From: Corallochytrium limacisporum Hawaii
Lineage: Eukaryota; Protista; Pluriformea
NCBI GenBank assembly: GCA_002811645.1
Contig: PDIP01000079.1
Span: 94,447 to 158,446, forward strand
Direction of reading: 5' to 3'
DNA: 64,000 bases
A model generated the notes under the pieces. The model did no database searches and was not told the DNA's origin. It worked only from the letters and a program-made list of their open reading frames with translations. A program made the translations under genes and the position numbers. Positions within the stretch are counted from its first letter, which is position 1. Every line of letters begins with the position of its first letter. Of the stretch, positions 54,828 to 64,000 are shown in pieces.

Positions 54828-57074
54828 TCATACCTTACGCACTGGAGTACTCATGGTATTGTCGTCATCGTCATGATGGTCAATGATGATGGTGTGGTCT
54901 CGTGGACTTGCACCGGGAGTGATACGTGGAGTGGCATTACTGCTGCTTCCGCTTACGCTCAAACCTCGTTTGTCAAGGAAATTGATGGCTGATTCGATAG
55001 TTGGGAAGATGAACTCTTCTCCAACTTCCTCCAGAAGACCACTCTTTTGGAAAACAGTAATGCTCGCCTGCGGAATCCGGGTAAAGCACACTATGACGTC
55101 CTTTTGGTGGTAGGATCGCACAATGTCGAGCAAAATGGAGGCGCCGGATATGTCCAGATACGGAACCTTCTTCACGTCAAAGACAGCGTACTCGATGCTC
55201 GGAATGGTTGCCTTCTCACTCGGATGTGTCTCCATGTTTCCGTACCGTTCCAGGCGGCCAATCCAGTCTCGCAGTTGGCTGGTGTTCCAAAAGTACAGGG
55301 CCTCATCGAGACGAATAAGTAGCACTCCTTGTAGAGGCTCAACATCTTCCCAGTCTGTGATTGGTTTCAAGGCTCCCGTCTGACGGTTTCGACCGATCAT
55401 CCGCATCTTAGGAAGGGTTGTATGCTTGAGAATCAGCAACAGGGACACCGTTACTCCGATGATAATACCGAGTTTTACTCCCAAACACAGAGTCGTAATG
55501 CAAACAGCCAGGTTTTGCGCAAATGAAGGAAAATCACGCATATGAATACTGTACAGAAGTTCGTGTGACTCAAACATTGCAATCGCAGCACTGACAACAA
55601 TGGCGGCCATGGTTGCCGTGGGCAAGTAAGTAAACAGGGGAAGAAGAGATTTCAGAATGACAGCAACCATTCCCGTCATGAATGCACTCACAAGCATGCT
55701 ACGACCTCCAGCAGCGTCCATTAAAGTTGCCCTTGGCATGGAGCCGTAAGCCGGAATGGCTCCGAAGAAAGACCCGAGAATGTTAGCAATCCCTAAACCA
55801 ACTAGCTCACGATTAGGGCTCATGGCTCGGTTACGTCGTCGAGCATACAGTTTCGCCACAGCCAAAGACTCGGCAATGCCGATGAGCGTAATAGAGGACG
55901 CCAAACCCAAGCAGGCGCTTACATCTGCCTTTGGCAATGTAACACTGGGGAAGTGCGCGTCGACTTGGCCGAGAACCGGCAATTCGTACCTCTCCACTGC
56001 ATTAGTTGACCACGCGACTAAACAGCCCAAGAAGCATACCACCGCGGGCATGGGAATCAACTGCAGGTGTGGGTTCTGTCCATTTTTGGTGTACACTGAC
56101 TTGATTGCACGCCACCCTGTCATGATTGCTAAACTTCCCAGCCCGTACATTGTGACTGCCCAATCAAGAGTGTCGATATTACGGACGTAGATCCAAATCT
56201 TCTCCACTGTGCTGGCATCGATTGGTTCTGCAATGGCAAGACCAAACAGCGGCCGAAACTGTTCTGTGAGCAAGGTAATTGCGGCTGCATTGGCGAAACC
56301 AGCGATCAGTGGCGGACTAAATACCACATCAAGATAGCCCATGCGAACAAAGCCTAAGAGGAAACACATGACTCCACTGAGCAGCGTGATCATAGCGATG
56401 TCACCACTGATCTCTGGCCCTTCCGCCACAATATCATTGCCAGATGGTGCAAGGCCTGCCTGCAGACCCCCTGGACTGAGTGCAACAGGTGGGGCACCAA
56501 ATGATCCGCCGGCAACACCATAAATGGAGCCTTCCAGGACATTTTGTGCAATCTCCCGACGGTAGGCATCTACCAACTCCGTCCCGAGCAAAATACTGAT
56601 CAGAGCTTCCGGTCCGATTACAATGTGTGGTGATGTCCCCATTAATGTATAGCCAAAAAGTGGCACAAGGCATGAATAGATACCCACCACAGGGCGCAAG
56701 TGTGCCAAATGGGCATAGGCTAAGCATTGCGGAATGAGCATGCACACGGTGGCGAGAGCCGCTACAAAATCGTACGGCATGGTCTCGGGCCTTACCTTGG
56801 TAATCCAGCTGAATAGTGGCAGGTAATACCGGACACGTTTCCGTACCGTAGACCACTTTCCCTTTTTCTTGACCGCAAACGTATCCTCAATGCCGCGATC
56901 TATGCTAGTTCTGTAGTTGAGCGGATCGTTGTTTTCATTGTCACTCGAGTTGGCAGATCCCTCAGTAGTAAAACTGTGATGAGGCGAACGGTCCCAAATA
57001 ATATTCGTTCCTAGGACGGACCCGAACGCGGACAGCAGTGGCTGCCGCTCTTGAGCGTTTGATGTTGATCCCAT
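54828..57074 (-). CDS. SulP/SLC26 anion transporter with STAS domain (YPR003C-like)
   Basis: YYLPLFSW, PQCLAYAHLA, GTSPHIVIGPE, PNRELVGLGIAN, STAS domain IRLDEALYFWN...RLERYG...YLDISG. Confidence 0.95.
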   Translation of the reverse strand: MGSTSNAQERQPLLSAFGSVLGTNIIWDRSPHHSFTTEGSANSSDNENNDPLNYRTSIDRGIEDTFAVKKKGKWSTVRKRVRYYLPLFSWITKVRPETMPYDFVAALATVCMLIPQCLAYAHLAHLRPVVGIYSCLVPLFGYTLMGTSPHIVIGPEALISILLGTELVDAYRREIAQNVLEGSIYGVAGGSFGAPPVALSPGGLQAGLAPSGNDIVAEGPEISGDIAMITLLSGVMCFLLGFVRMGYLDVVFSPPLIAGFANAAAITLLTEQFRPLFGLAIAEPIDASTVEKIWIYVRNIDTLDWAVTMYGLGSLAIMTGWRAIKSVYTKNGQNPHLQLIPMPAVVCFLGCLVAWSTNAVERYELPVLGQVDAHFPSVTLPKADVSACLGLASSITLIGIAESLAVAKLYARRRNRAMSPNRELVGLGIANILGSFFGAIPAYGSMPRATLMDAAGGRSMLVSAFMTGMVAVILKSLLPLFTYLPTATMAAIVVSAAIAMFESHELLYSIHMRDFPSFAQNLAVCITTLCLGVKLGIIIGVTVSLLLILKHTTLPKMRMIGRNRQTGALKPITDWEDVEPLQGVLLIRLDEALYFWNTSQLRDWIGRLERYGNMETHPSEKATIPSIEYAVFDVKKVPYLDISGASILLDIVRSYHQKDVIVCFTRIPQASITVFQKSGLLEEVGEEFIFPTIESAINFLDKRGLSVSGSSSNATPRITPGASPRDHTIIIDHHDDDDNTMSTPVRKV

Positions 57075-59282
57075 TATATTTCTCCTCCTCAGTTCATTTT
57101 GGGATCACATGGGTGCGCCACGTCTACCTCTCTACCGTCCTTAGAGAAGTGGTTTGTGTCCTCCACTTGAAATAACTTCTCAACATTGTGCTGTGACTTA
57201 GGAAGAAGCAGACTCATGCAACGCTGCATGCACGTGTGTAGCGTGATGCCTGAACCTGAGCGAACAGCGATTGAGCTGTTTGGTAGTGAAACAGAAAGAT
57301 TCGTCGCCCATCGATAATGGCGTGGACAGGATGGTGACGACGGGTCTTGGTGACAAATTGAATATCTATACAAATTGTATGCTACATTTCATCGAGATTG
57401 CCACAACTTTACTATCTTCAGTATCGGCTTGGCGCCAGTGAAATGGTGCGGTCGTCTTCCGAGGGTGCGTTCTTAGGCCAGTCGTACGCGGCGGGATTCA
57501 GTGACTTCAACCGTGGTTGGTACCAACCACTGCGCTGCAGAGTCCGAATGAGTGTGGCAGTGGGAGTGGGTGTGTGTCCCACTGGACAGTCCCGCAAGAA
57601 AACCCAACCCACCCCTCCCCCCAATCCTCGATGGAGGCGAGTAAGGCACTTCTCACCACCAAACAAAGGGGGCAAAAAGTGACCTAAATTTTCACACGGA
57701 CGAGTCCCAAAGCAGGTACCGGGACGGAAAACGACTCTTGTCCCGAACCAAACAATCCCCCCCCCCCCCCTCCCCGGGGGGGAAGGGATCAACAATCTAC
57801 AGCTCACATCGGTCGGTGATCTATCCAGCCCCTCTTCCACACCATTCAATCCCTCACTTTCTGTATATTGTGCGGGAGTACGGGGAAGGGGGGTTTTGCA
57901 GACGAACGGATCCGGAAGTGGGCAGGTGTACCCCGGTGGCGTTTGGCACTGTAGCAAAATTACAGGGGGGGGGGGGGAATGCAGAACTGAGGAGGAGAGG
58001 GGAAAACATCCCCCGGTGAAAAAAGAAAGGGGGGAAGGGAAGGGGAACAAAAGGCCGTCCGTCTAAAAAAAGCCAGTCCAGGCCTCCAGCGTTTGATTCT
58101 GCGCACAATCACTACCAGGTGGTACTGATTTTCTCTTTGACGCTCCCTTTCTTTGGGGGCCCCTTGTGATCAGTAGTGGGTATCGGAGGAACACAGCCGG
58201 GGACAAGCACGACATACACAGCAAGCAGCCACGTCTTGTAAGTTCTCCCCAGCTTCACTTTCAGTTGCAACATGGGCAGGGGGTTCCAGCAGTAGTGTTC
58301 GCTTATCGCTGAATGGGGCTTTGTTTGTGTCTGTGTTAAAAAACAATAGCCAAGTGCTTTTTCCCAAATGTCATAGCAAATTTGTGCAGTGGCGGTAAGA
58401 TAGTAGTCAATAGTTAAACGTTCTGCTATGGGAGTTGCTCAAACCCAATTGCATTGGCCATAGATGGCGAACGGTTCGCAAATGACGACATTCTCTAGCT
58501 ACATAAGAAACATGAAAGACACGTGCTACCGCCAACAGCGTTTCTTGCGGCTAGAAGCGTAGAGTTCACAGTCCTCCGAACAAGAGGAGGAGCAAACGAA
58601 GCGGGCAATAGAAAAATTCAGAGAAAAATTGCAGAATAAGCGCGTTTGCAACACCGGAGCGCGGATTTAGAAATATGGACTGTAAACCTGTGGGTGAGGT
58701 AGAGCACCCAGAACTATGAGATCAACCCAGGTGCAATGTACCTAGTCATCCAAGGGCCCTGCAGATTCACATGTGCTCCATTAGGATTGAGAACCTGTGT
58801 ATGCGACGAAGGCGAGAGGGGTAGATGTCCCTTCATGTCCGACACGAAGATCCGCTACTTTTGGATGGCGGTCTTGGAGAAGGACTGTCATTTGTCGAAT
58901 ATCATGCCCACCGCCCTATATTTTGTGCTGCATTGAACAAACCTCACAAAACCAGTTTTACATCAGTTGCTTAACCCAAATCTAATTGTTAAATCGAGGG
59001 GAAAGAGGTCCAAAGGCCTCTGTGCACTGCGCAAACTTCCCAACTGACGGCAGGGACTTTGCAGCGATGCCATCAGAAATGTTTGGAGGGCTAGCAATTT
59101 ACTCTGTTATGACTGCTTGCATCGTTAGTGTCAAAATGACATTCTGTTCCTGAATTGTGTTTAGTGGTATGTGGCTCATTCGGCAACTAACGGGTATAAG
59201 AACCACGATGATCAGCCTTGCAGTGCTCATTTCCGAGTGCCATTAGGCTTGCTGAAGTAACTCTGTATCGGTGCTGGCAGTC

Positions 59283-62200
59283 ATGGTCGCTGAAACAAAC
59301 CAAACATATCTGCACGAGCAGGTACCGGCCCAGGTGGTCGTTGTCGGCTTGGGCATGTCTGCTCTGAAGTGTTTGGATCGTCTCACGGAAAACAAAGCTG
59401 TCGCTCGTCTGGCAGAGATTACAGTCATAGGTGAGGAGATCCACCCTTGCTACAACCGTGTTGGCCTTACAAATTACTTTACCCATTTCTCAAATGAAAA
59501 GATGTATATGGTACAGGAGAGTTGGTACCAAGAGCGAAATATTACTCTTCAGCTGAACAGCTGGGTTCGATCCATTAACCGAGAAAACCGAACCGTCGAG
59601 TACTTGGACGCTGCCGGCAACACTGTCCACAAATCCTACGACTACCTTCTTTTGGCTACAGGATCGATATCCTTTATTCCTCCTGTGAAAACCGACTGTG
59701 GTATTGATAAAGATCATCTCCTTGATATAGAAGGTGTTTTTGCATACCGTGGTCTCGATGATGTAGCCAAGATGGTGGACTACGCCGTTAAGTCAACCAC
59801 TAAATCAGCTATCGTGATTGGTGGGGGCCTTTTAGGGCTTGAGGCAGCGAAGGCCCTGAAAGACATGAATCTTCGTACAACCGTCATCGAGCGTAATCCG
59901 CACATTCTGGCTAGACAAGTAGATGAAGCTGCTGGTCGGCTAATTGCTGAACAAGTGGGATCTCTTGGAGTCCACGTTCAGTGCCGCACCGGCATCCGCC
60001 AAATGCTTACAGAAAAAGGAGAAGCGGAAGACTCGCCTAAGATGAGCGGCGTGCAGCTTGGAGATGGACTGATTTTAGACGCTCAGATGATGGTATTTGC
60101 TGCTGGTATTTTGCCACGAGATGACCTGGCAAGCTGTGGACTTGAAAAAGAGCACAATCGCCGCGGTTTCAAAGTCAATGACCATATGCTAACCAGTGAT
60201 GATCGTATTTATGCTATTGGTGAGTGTGCCACCCACCGTGGTGTAAACTACGGACTTATTGCCCCGTGCTATCGCATGGCCGAAACTGCTATGCAGCATC
60301 TTTGCACCCGGTTATTAGAAGGCCTCCAAGTGGCCTCTCGTGATGTCACCCCTTATGCAGGCAGTGACATGAGCACCAAGCTGAAACTGCTCGGCGTTCA
60401 TGTTGCGTCTGTTGCAGATTACTTTGCTGACCAGCGGAATGAGGGCATCGCAATGACCTTTGTTGACCCCTTCTCAAGAACTTACAAAAAGCTCATCTTT
60501 GATCTCGATGGCCATCGTCTGCTTGGTGCTATTTTGGTCGGCGACACGAACGACTATGGCAAGTTGCTGCAACTAGCAACTAAGAGCACCAAAGAATGGG
60601 AATCTCCTAACGAACTCATTCTCGGTGTCTCCAAAGAAGAGGGCGGCGATGCACTTGCTGATGACACACAAGTGTGCTCGTGCAATAATGTGACAAAGAA
60701 GAATATCTGCGATGCCATCCGCAACAACAAGTTGACAGCCATTGGTGAAGTTAAGAGCTGCACAAAAGCAGGAACAAGTTGTGGAGGATGTATGCCGCTG
60801 GTTAATGATATCTTTTCCAAAGAACTTGCAAAAGCTGGTGGCAAGATCAGCAAAGCTGTGTGCACCCACTTTAAGGAATCTCGGGCTGAGCTTTTCAGCA
60901 TCATCCAGGTCATGAACTACCAGAGCTTGGAAGAGGTCATGAAGTCCCGCGGTACCAATCCCGACGCCGAGGGCTGTGAGGAGTGCAAACCTATGCTGGC
61001 ATCCATATTTGCATCCTTACACAATAAGCATATTCTGAAAAGCAAGCGTGCTGCACTTCAGGATACTAATGATCGCTTTCTTGCCAACATACAGAGAGAT
61101 GCGACATACAGCGTTGTCCCCCGTATTCCTGGTGGCGAGATCACACCTCAACAGCTGACTGTTCTTGGTGAAGTAGCTAAGAAATATGGCTTGTACACGA
61201 AGATCACCGGTGGCCAAAGAGTAGACCTCTTTGGTGCCCCTGTACACAAGTTGCCTGACATTTGGGCTGATCTTGTAAAGGAAGGATTCGAAAGTGGTCA
61301 CGCTTACGGAAAGAGTCTCCGCACAGTAAAAAGCTGTGTAGGCAGTACATGGTGCCGATATGGTTTACGTGACAGTGTTGGCATGGCCGTAAATGTTGAA
61401 GAGCGTTACAAAGGTTTGCGTGCACCTCACAAGCTCAAAGGTGCGGTAAGTGGTTGTGTTCGTGAGTGTGCAGAGGCCCAATCCAAAGACTTTGGAATGA
61501 TTGCTACCGAGAAAGGTTACAATGTATATGTATGCGGCAATGGTGGTAGTAAACCTCGCCATGCTGATCTTTTGGTGGCTGATGTATCTGAAGAAGATGC
61601 CATCAAATACTTGGACCGTTTTTTGATGTTCTACGTCCGTACTGCCGATCGCCTACAGCGTACGGCTCGTTGGTTAGAGAGTTTGGATGGGGGTTTGGAC
61701 TACCTCAAGGCTGTTGTTGTTGACGATAGCCTTGGTATTGCTGAAGAGCTGGAACGGCAGATGGAGGCTCATGTTGGTTCTTACAAGTGTGAATGGAAGG
61801 AAGTTGTCGAAGATCCTGAACTAATCGCTGAATTCAAGCAATTCATAAATACTGACGAAACTGAGAAACCAACCATTGAACCTATTGACCAGCGCGGTCA
61901 AAAACGCCCAGCAGATTGGCCAAAAAACCACAAGGTCGGCCAGCTGGGAGTAAAGAAGGCAGACGGTGCAGCTAATCCGGAGGAGAACAGCATCAAAGCA
62001 ATTATGGAACAATGGCGAGTAGACAACGTTCTGAGCTGGAAGACAGTTGGACACATATTTGATGTACAGAATTCCCTTGGGCGCTCGTTTCGCTACGGGA
62101 AGAGCCAGTTGGCAGTCTTCTTCCATGCAAAGACCGAGACATTCTATGTCACGCAGAACATGTGCCCACACAAGCGCGCCTTTGTACTGTCCCGAGGAAT

Positions 62201-62516
62201 AATTGGTGATGTGGACGAACAAACACCCAAGGTAGCATGTCCCTTGCACAAGAAGACATTCAATTTGAAAACAGGGGATAGCATTAGTGACCCCGATGAT
62301 TACGAAATCTTTGCATTCAAGGCACGTGGAAACCGTGACGGCACAATCGAAGCCCTACTACCTCCCACCGATCTGCTGGATACTTTTTTGGCAACAGAAC
62401 GACATGTCATCCGCAAGAACGACGAGACTGGCATTTCGTACATTGCCTCTCCGCCACCTGGCAAGGCTTGTGGCACGGGTGGTGGTGGTTGTGGTGGGTC
62501 AGCCATGGAGTGGTGA
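59283..62516 (+). CDS. niiA: Assimilatory NAD(P)H nitrite reductase (NirB plus Rieske NirD fusion, fungal NiiA type)
   Basis: FAD/NAD(P) folds (VVVGLGM, YNRVGLT, VIGGGLLGLEAA), BFD-like CSCNNV...CGGC, siroheme/4Fe-4S cysteines KSCVGSTWC and GCVREC, Rieske NMCPHK...ACPLH. First ATG at 59283. Confidence 0.97.
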   Translation: MVAETNQTYLHEQVPAQVVVVGLGMSALKCLDRLTENKAVARLAEITVIGEEIHPCYNRVGLTNYFTHFSNEKMYMVQESWYQERNITLQLNSWVRSINRENRTVEYLDAAGNTVHKSYDYLLLATGSISFIPPVKTDCGIDKDHLLDIEGVFAYRGLDDVAKMVDYAVKSTTKSAIVIGGGLLGLEAAKALKDMNLRTTVIERNPHILARQVDEAAGRLIAEQVGSLGVHVQCRTGIRQMLTEKGEAEDSPKMSGVQLGDGLILDAQMMVFAAGILPRDDLASCGLEKEHNRRGFKVNDHMLTSDDRIYAIGECATHRGVNYGLIAPCYRMAETAMQHLCTRLLEGLQVASRDVTPYAGSDMSTKLKLLGVHVASVADYFADQRNEGIAMTFVDPFSRTYKKLIFDLDGHRLLGAILVGDTNDYGKLLQLATKSTKEWESPNELILGVSKEEGGDALADDTQVCSCNNVTKKNICDAIRNNKLTAIGEVKSCTKAGTSCGGCMPLVNDIFSKELAKAGGKISKAVCTHFKESRAELFSIIQVMNYQSLEEVMKSRGTNPDAEGCEECKPMLASIFASLHNKHILKSKRAALQDTNDRFLANIQRDATYSVVPRIPGGEITPQQLTVLGEVAKKYGLYTKITGGQRVDLFGAPVHKLPDIWADLVKEGFESGHAYGKSLRTVKSCVGSTWCRYGLRDSVGMAVNVEERYKGLRAPHKLKGAVSGCVRECAEAQSKDFGMIATEKGYNVYVCGNGGSKPRHADLLVADVSEEDAIKYLDRFLMFYVRTADRLQRTARWLESLDGGLDYLKAVVVDDSLGIAEELERQMEAHVGSYKCEWKEVVEDPELIAEFKQFINTDETEKPTIEPIDQRGQKRPADWPKNHKVGQLGVKKADGAANPEENSIKAIMEQWRVDNVLSWKTVGHIFDVQNSLGRSFRYGKSQLAVFFHAKTETFYVTQNMCPHKRAFVLSRGIIGDVDEQTPKVACPLHKKTFNLKTGDSISDPDDYEIFAFKARGNRDGTIEALLPPTDLLDTFLATERHVIRKNDETGISYIASPPPGKACGTGGGGCGGSAMEW

Positions 62517-63799
62517 CCTCCCCGTCCGCACATTTTGCTGCCATACAGCATATTAAATTCGTACTATAATATCTACGTCCTCATGATCATATTGCTGTAG
62601 AACATTATAACACTGGAGGCGAGAGTACGATGCCAAGGAAACCGAGACGATCCAGCAGTTGGTGATAGTAATGCGACGTTTTCCGCGTGTGTGAAAGAGT
62701 TTCCGGAAACATCGCTCTTCTGTAGGAACCAGGTATTTTCTAGTTGTTGCGCTATTCCGTGTCCATTCGTGGTGATGATGATGAATGATGATGAGGAACA
62801 GGGTAATTTCTTACAAGCTACAACTAGGAACATGACACATCTTCAATACGCAACCCGACAGGAAGTGGTTCCGCGCAAGTGCTCAGCATAGCTTACGATG
62901 ATTTTAACGTGTCCATCACTGCGCAGCTTTACAACGAAAATCCCCACAAAAGGATTTCCGCAACCTGCAGCTTTTGTTTTCGTTTATTTAGGTATTTCGA
63001 CAACAGATTCCATCGTACCAGTACTGCCTATAACGTGCGCAGGTGGTCGAGTTTTATCGCGTCCTATAAGCAGCCTGGGAAGCCAGAGGCAATGGACCTG
63101 AAACCAAAATTATGACGGCGTTTGAAGGTTAGGTGGGAAAGCAGCTTCTCATACTGTTTGTCACTGGGGTTTGCAAATTGTGGCAGAGGGCAGCTATTGC
63201 ATTTTGCCTTAGATATCAATAAATCGGACGCCTGACAAATCCCACTCTATGATGCCACTTATAGGGCAGATCCAGTGGACAGTCCAGCCCAAAAGAAAGT
63301 ATGTATTGCTCCTACCCTTCCGACGACCGTGTGCTCTTATGCAGAGAGTACCCTCCATTCCGTGCTCGATCGAGTCGTGCTTATGAAGAGTAGGATACTA
63401 CGCGAGCGACAAAGAGTTCCGCGAGCAACCACAGGCCCCTTCTGAACCGGAAGGGAGAGCGACCCTGTGCAGGAACGACGGAAGAAAGAGACAGAGAGAG
63501 AAAAGGACGGGGGAGCGTACGGATTCAAATTCACAGCACAACTCATCGTTCCAAGCACCAGCGCCTCAGCGAACACAGGAAGCATGCTCCGAACATTGCT
63601 CATCGTGAATGACCATTATCCTACTAGATTGATAACGCATACCCTTTTTGATCACACTCGCACCGTCGTGGGAGAAAAATCATGTCTCATAGTCCCTATT
63701 TAAGAAGACCAATGTTTTACATCAGATCATTGATCTCAATGTTCTTTATTTAATTCACAGATCAACAGTATTCTGTGTTTGAGTAGAATCACTTTTGTA

Positions 63800-64000
63800 A
63801 TGAAGACACAATCCACTCTTATCAAAGCATCCTGTTTGACTGTTGGCTTGGCTATGTCCTTGGCAGTCAGCGTCTCCAGCGCACCTGCCGACACGCCAAA
63901 ATATGAGTCGTATGAGATCATCAAAATGGTCTGCAGTGACAGTATCTTGGCGTTACACCAGTGTGATGGGTTAGGGTTAGGGTTAGGGTTAGGGTTAGGG
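63800..64000 (+). CDS. Signal-peptide ORF truncated by, or reading into, the telomere (no stop codon)
   Basis: Hand translation: MKTQSTLIKASCLTVGLAMSLAVSVSSAPADTPKYESYEIIKMVCSDSILALHQCDGLGLGLGLGLG. Absent from the ORF track, presumably because it has no stop. Confidence 0.55.
   Translation, partial: MKTQSTLIKASCLTVGLAMSLAVSVSSAPADTPKYESYEIIKMVCSDSILALHQCDGLGLGLGLGLG
63968..64000 (+). repeat. Telomere repeat GGG(TTAGGG)5
   Basis: Perfect TTAGGG units at the window end, with the G-rich strand running 5'->3' toward the end. Confidence 0.95.

Follow-up and report, generated by a model that had tools for sequence, protein, structure and literature searches.

In Plasmodium falciparum 3D7, hallmarks of telomere healing are found at 5 of 28 chromosome ends, and in four of these the telomeric repeats lie within a truncated var gene (PMC5550746). 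Priming by telomerase prefers TG-rich sequence (PMC5550746). Breakage followed by telomere addition is a programmed event in Ascaris and Oscheius tipulae, where DNA elimination is developmental, uses defined break regions or motifs, and goes with a separate germline (PMC13060919, bioRxiv 10.1101/2020.04.18.047035). The telomeric repeat can also be a source of protein. Gly-Leu (GL) and Val-Arg (VR) dipeptide products have been reported from mammalian cells, where translation would start without an ATG in the repeat itself (PMC9992779).

We have analyzed a window of 64,000 nt of Corallochytrium limacisporum DNA (G000:C263:94447-158446), the right end of which is the end of a contig of 158,446 nt (C263, scaffold79_len158446) in an Illumina/SPAdes assembly. 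At this end an open reading frame with a signal-peptide-like start passes directly into telomeric repeats. We think it probable that a terminal break was healed by de novo addition of a telomere inside a gene for a small secreted protein, and that the resulting Gly-Leu reading frame is incidental.

The right end of C263 and its surroundings

An ATG at position 63800 opens 56 sense codons (MKTQ...HQCD), read and translated through to position 63967. The sequence that ends directly before the junction at 63967/63968 is ...CAGTGTGAT. From there the DNA has perfect TTAGGG periodicity (GGG TTA GGG ...) for 33 nt on the forward strand (63968 to 64000), beginning with GGG and with the G-strand running 5' to 3' toward the contig end. 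The tract is translated as (Gly-Leu)n, and there is no stop codon between the ATG and the end of the window. The three frames of TTAGGG read as GL, VR and Gly-stop, and ORF 63800 enters the GL frame. The stop-less passage into the repeat and the coding character of the three G-strand frames had both been described in an earlier note on this DNA; each was confirmed by translation, and the end is a true contig end.

The first 28 codons (63800 to 63883, forward strand) resemble a signal peptide, with a basic n-region, an uncharged hydrophobic core of 16 residues, and Ser-Ser-Ala ahead of the proposed cleavage site. The following 28 codons (63884 to 63967, forward strand) would be the beginning of the mature peptide; they include two cysteines, and the frame is cut at their end. 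No Met precedes this ATG in the open frame, and the n/h/c pattern comes directly after it. All scoring of signal peptides was by a crude home-made n/h/c-region rule. The start proposed in the earlier note fits this rule, which however also accepts about 5% of random positions or pseudo-junctions. The open frame extends 22 codons 5' of the ATG, giving 78 codons in total to the junction, for which the chance is about 2.4% per frame in DNA of 50% GC. Taken alone a frame of this length is within chance, and the case for a gene is strengthened by the signal-peptide-like N-terminus together with a TATA box.

The candidate TATA element of the cut gene is a TATTTAA box at 63697 to 63703 (forward strand), lying 103 nt 5' of the ATG, and there is another TATTTAA at 63747. 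In 9 of 11 genes of a secreted Cys-rich family the sequence TAT[AT]TAA lies 91-137 nt 5' of the ATG, and in three other telomere-facing signal-peptide ORFs the box is 87-127 nt 5' of the ATG. The background frequency of the box in the window is 1.4e-4 per strand position, corresponding to P ~0.008 for a given stretch of 60 nt. Codon usage was not discriminating. The log-odds score of 0.07 bits per codon is the best of the three sense frames, and falls within the coding and non-coding distributions alike.

No relative of ORF 63800 was found by protein search of its own genome or by word-index search, no homologue by phmmer against 1.84 billion representatives, and no match in Pfam; the best score with ESM Atlas features was 0.81, which is below recognition. 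A weak match in the same genome on contig C64 (E 0.03, low complexity) proved to be a CT-rich non-coding stretch. No other contig of the assembly carries a continuation or second copy of 63300-63966. The intact paralogue or allele continuing past the junction that the earlier note had envisaged was thus sought in the genome and in protein searches, and not found. There is thus no intact paralogue, allele or orthologue from which the lost part could be read. The ORF is missing from the public protein sets searched, and so was probably never annotated. Searches in both directions revealed no sequence similarity between ORF 63800 and the secreted Cys-rich family, the spacing of the TATA box being the sole trait they share. 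With some doubt, we regard ORF 63800 as the putative 5' part of a real, lineage-specific gene for a small secreted protein.

Upstream of the ORF lies a non-coding element of about 260 nt (63160 to 63412, forward strand), for which the only other copy is in the left subtelomere of another contig (C265:1295-1566, minus strand), with 73-82% identity. The copies differ by indels of 4-16 nt that are not in multiples of three. They have the same orientation relative to the telomere, and both lie 0.55-1.3 kb from it, upstream of a telomere-facing signal-peptide ORF. A search of 62517-63967 against Rfam gave no match. The element is probably what remains of an old duplication that involved two chromosome ends.

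Further to the left is a nitrite reductase ORF of 1081 codons (window 59271-62516). The NAD(P)H nitrite reductase of C. limacisporum has been placed at the end of scaffold79_len158446, with nrt2 on scaffold99_len85036 (Ocana-Pallares et al., PMC6400420), and a published PCR product of about 500 bp joins the right end of the contig C284 to window position ~57785 and rightward (PMC6400420). The primers can be located: F72C (PMC6400420) matches the minus strand of the window at 57786-57814, and R73C (PMC6400420) matches C284:84705-84736, in a contig of 85,036 nt. At the right end of C284 (C284:77600-85036) lie nrt2, a CLC channel and a molybdopterin oxidoreductase, and the contig ends in poly-C. 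In C263 the sequence left of the poly-C/poly-G run differs from the PCR product. We conclude that the assembly has probably joined C263 wrongly at the homopolymer at 57756-57783. Because the PCR links C284 to ~57785 and the sequence left of the homopolymer differs, the last 6.2 kb of C263, comprising the nitrite reductase, the gene stump and the telomere, probably belong after the nrt2 scaffold, in the likely order nrt2, CLC channel, ORF of unknown function, molybdopterin oxidoreductase, gap, nitrite reductase, stump and telomere. If C263 is mis-joined, the nitrite reductase is neither solitary nor truly paired with the SulP gene at 54828-57074.

Telomeric ends across the assembly

When the genome was searched for three units of TTAGGG, 20 contig ends and one short internal site were found, and examination of a further 120 contig ends added 18 more with tracts of 10-16 nt. 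In all 38 telomere-bearing ends the G-strand runs 5' to 3' toward the contig end, and at no contig end, including the 120 further ends, did we find a finish in CCCTAA. Interstitial repeats at which the assembly had broken would be expected in both polarities, and this explanation was rejected since one alone is seen. The single polarity of all the tracts indicates that these ends are true telomeres. Just 10-62 nt of telomere are assembled per end, as a result of the short-read assembly.

Unique DNA abuts the repeat directly at all ends. Apart from the 260-nt element common to C263 and C265, no sequence in the last 3 kb is shared among the first 21 ends. There is thus no buffer between genes and telomeres. 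The earlier note had remarked on the absence of degenerate repeats at the C263 junction; this is true, but it is not special to this end, since nearly all the ends of the genome are alike.

The fraction of G and T in the 20 nt before the tract is 0.55, compared with 0.47 (P ~0.009, 20 ends), a modest effect that fits the preference of telomerase for priming on TG-rich sequence (PMC5550746). In 14 of 20 ends the tract starts with GGG, AGGG or TAGGG. At C263 G or T occupies five of the six positions just ahead of the tract (GTGTGA-T) and the tract itself starts with GGG, which agrees with the suggestion in the earlier note that this GGG could act as a seed for telomerase.

Two tracts depart from the common form. 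At the left end of C262 variants of sequence TGAGGG lie between the unique DNA and the perfect tract, the sole such case in the first 21 ends, and this may be an older telomere than the abrupt junctions elsewhere. Within the 115-kb contig C47, at ~79390-79419, there is an internal (TTAGG)2(TTAGGG)3 beside a poly-G run, followed by unique DNA. This could be a remnant of healing or capture in the past, or the product of a chimeric join.

Several other ends cut genes. At the left end of C10 a signal-peptide ORF of 43 codons enters the GL frame of the repeat. Its paralogues, at least 12 proteins of 136-146 aa with identities of up to 67%, all continue for about 100 codons past the cut to a conserved ...PPKW end. 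The C10 end is a plain truncation. At the left end of C35 an exon whose FG-GAP_2 repeat passes the Pfam cut-off (E 6.7e-10) is cut within the next repeat, with a stop supplied by the TAG of the telomere. At the left end of C190 (C190:21-788, plus strand) a frame of 256 codons, acidic and rich in Glu and Gln, matches no Pfam family. Because this frame lacks Met and is open from the junction inward, we read it as a gene that has lost its 5' end, including the start, to the telomere. The left end of C143 carries a Cys-rich signal-peptide ORF of 65 codons that enters the GL frame and has no paralogue in the genome, while at the left end of C265 a signal-peptide ORF stops 30 nt short of the repeat. 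Open frames that are clearly non-coding also enter the GL frame, at C58 left and C260 right. The possibility that other ends too terminate inside ORFs has therefore been borne out, with at least three cut genes (C10, C35 and C190 left) and two signal-peptide stumps (C143 and C265 left). About 6 of the 38 ends have gene fragments in or at them, mostly from genes for secreted or surface proteins.

The secreted Cys-rich family is an orphan, having no Pfam match. It has at least 12 members, of 136-146 aa except for one two-domain member of 258 aa, with the pattern MK.F...GA.VGMA.ASP...C..PP.C....CC, a ...PPKW end and a conserved signal peptide. Loci are found on C38, C4, C59, C265, C231, C182, C133 and C91, with tandem copies on C59 and C38; several are no more than 3 kb away from the end of a contig, and one C265 copy has an in-frame stop.

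Origin of the junction

A break followed by telomere addition inside a secreted-protein gene was one of two explanations put forward in the earlier note. It is favored by the TATA box, the polarity of the repeat, and the cut genes at C10, C35 and C190, but it is unproven for ORF 63800, which has no intact relative. What the data show directly is the junction with its polarity, a promoter-like box, and genes that are cut at other ends as well; from these we infer the break, its healing and the former remainder of the gene.

By this explanation ORF 63800 would be a promoter-proximal stump that retains the TATA box, the 5' leader, the signal peptide and the first 28 residues of the mature protein. 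A double-strand break distal to or within the gene would have been followed by resection, after which telomerase could have primed on the G/T-rich 3' end (...GTGTGAT-GGG) to make a new TTAGGG telomere, with the loss of all sequence past codon 56. The Gly-Leu frame would then be an accident of the point at which repeats were added. Non-stop decay is expected to remove stop-less RNAs. Should the promoter still be active, the TERRA-like read-through RNA would be lost in this way, and no useful protein would result. In a telomere-facing gene the sense strand would be the primer strand, on which Cys (TGT), Gly, Val and Trp codons would give G/T-rich primers. Sense-strand priming may favor telomere-facing Cys-rich genes, because these codons offer primers. 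Both Ku70 and Ku80 are present in the genome, and their presence rules out a loss of end joining as the cause of frequent healing.

The ORF could alternatively have arisen by chance at an ordinary old chromosome end, where no gene was ever cut and the last 270 nt happen to be open in one frame that starts with hydrophobic residues. We consider this unlikely. The ORF has no homologue at any level, its codon score does not discriminate, and neither the 78-codon frame nor the response of the signal-peptide rule, at the rates given above for a random frame and for pseudo-junctions, is beyond chance; the non-coding frames at C58 and C260 that enter the GL frame point the same way. Against it, the canonical n/h/c pattern follows directly on the first Met of the frame, TATTTAA lies at the distance typical of the family with the low probability calculated above for a 60-nt stretch, and sister ends have verified cut genes (C10 and C35). 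It is also quite unlikely that the junction is a minority one, either a healed terminal deletion in a sub-population or a chimeric path in the short-read assembly, with the gene intact in most cells. The apparent mis-joining of C263 at a homopolymer 6.2 kb upstream, indicated by the published PCR (PMC6400420), and an assembled repeat of just 33 nt are consistent with such an origin. But neither a continuation nor another copy of 63300-63966 is found on any other contig; where a majority path competes, the contig would normally break ahead of the repeat; and all tracts at contig ends have the correct polarity.

There are two features that purely random breakage does not predict. The stumps are all short (43-65 codons), and the distance from TATA box to telomere is near constant in four ends, being 271 nt at C263 right, 282 nt at C143 left, 257 nt at C10 left and 240 nt at C265 left. 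These ends have the same layout of TATTTA[AT], then 87-127 nt, then an ATG with a signal peptide, then the telomere. A scan statistic for constant spacing of the TATA box gives P ~5e-4 at the measured box frequency, and in simulation four cuts placed at random in 400-nt transcripts are all within 42 nt in about 1% of cases; the statistics on the layout are post hoc, and C265 left is not independent, having been found through its homology to the C263 subtelomere. When the rule was fixed beforehand the combination of TATA box and signal peptide was found at none of 18 further telomeric ends (4 of 38 overall), and it was rejected as a general arrangement.

The layout could be taken as a selected unit at the very end of the chromosome, in which an outward-facing TATA promoter ~260 nt from the repeats is a TERRA promoter, or drives a signal peptide-(Gly-Leu)n protein with a tail dependent on telomere length. 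All three signal-peptide ORFs that enter the repeat (C263, C143 and C10) do so in the GL frame, the orientation is that of TERRA, and GL and VR dipeptide proteins have been reported from telomeric RNA in mammalian cells, the nearest known parallel (PMC9992779), all of which would agree with such a unit, as would the shared layout and its scan statistic. Yet when C263 is set aside the frame agreement is 2 of 2, with P ~0.11. The C10 ORF is a truncated family member, whose relatives continue for ~100 more codons, and the C265 ORF stops 30 nt ahead of the repeat. With the post hoc statistics, the lack of independence of C265 and the failure at 18 further ends, a selected unit is most improbable. 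We judge it very unlikely that a subset of ends is kept in a fixed layout, with a candidate TATA promoter 240-282 nt from the repeats and a signal-peptide ORF that always enters the GL frame, serving as a TERRA promoter or as the source of a secretory poly-GL that would report telomere length. If it were so, selection or a chromatin-guided preference in healing would set where new telomeres are tolerated, and if the constant spacing proved real it would have implications for the way in which genomes that lack subtelomeric repeats arrange telomeric transcription. The TERRA-like mRNA that was the second explanation of the earlier note is not needed to explain the sequence; the C10 stump, also in the GL frame, comes from a family that is normally ~100 codons longer.

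Comparison with known systems

To our knowledge telomere healing inside genes has not been described in a unicellular holozoan. Corallochytrium is a compact relative of animals that has no repeat buffer at its chromosome ends, and about one sixth of the assembled ends lie inside a gene, mostly one for a secreted or surface protein. It thus offers, outside parasites and yeasts, a simple system in which to study the healing of breaks by telomerase and the turnover of subtelomeric genes for secreted proteins. In annotation, ORFs at such ends are to be taken as stumps and left out of gene counts.

A transcript from the C263 end would be like TERRA, in that the candidate promoter lies in unique DNA and faces the chromosome end, and the RNA would carry UUAGGG. 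GL is one of the two open frames of TERRA RNA, and is the frame that ORF 63800 enters. In contrast to the mammalian products of TERRA, an ATG and signal peptide would be fused upstream of the dipeptides. The end would also resemble those created by programmed DNA elimination in Ascaris and Oscheius tipulae, where new telomeres likewise cap breaks with little need for particular sequence (PMC13060919, bioRxiv 10.1101/2020.04.18.047035). Unlike in those systems, nothing in Corallochytrium points to reproducible break sites, a shared motif or two versions of the genome, and no sequence common to the ends was found.

The likeness to P. falciparum 3D7 is closer. In both organisms telomere repeats are fused directly to truncated coding sequence with no subtelomeric elements between, and the sequences on which priming would have occurred are rich in G and T. 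Truncation in 3D7 affects genes for exported or surface proteins, which the parasite can do without in culture, and genes of the same type are cut at ends of Corallochytrium. In each cultured reference genome several ends are affected, 5 of 28 in 3D7 and ~6 of 38 here. The organism, a unicellular holozoan, and the repeat, TTAGGG, are different, and no end of Corallochytrium is buffered by repeats, so that healed and native ends look alike. Weak end joining has been invoked for Plasmodium, whereas Corallochytrium has both Ku70 and Ku80. For the presumed truncated gene at ORF 63800, in contrast to those of P. falciparum, no intact progenitor was found. The end of C263 most likely records an event of this known kind, an old break capped by telomerase, in a new organism.
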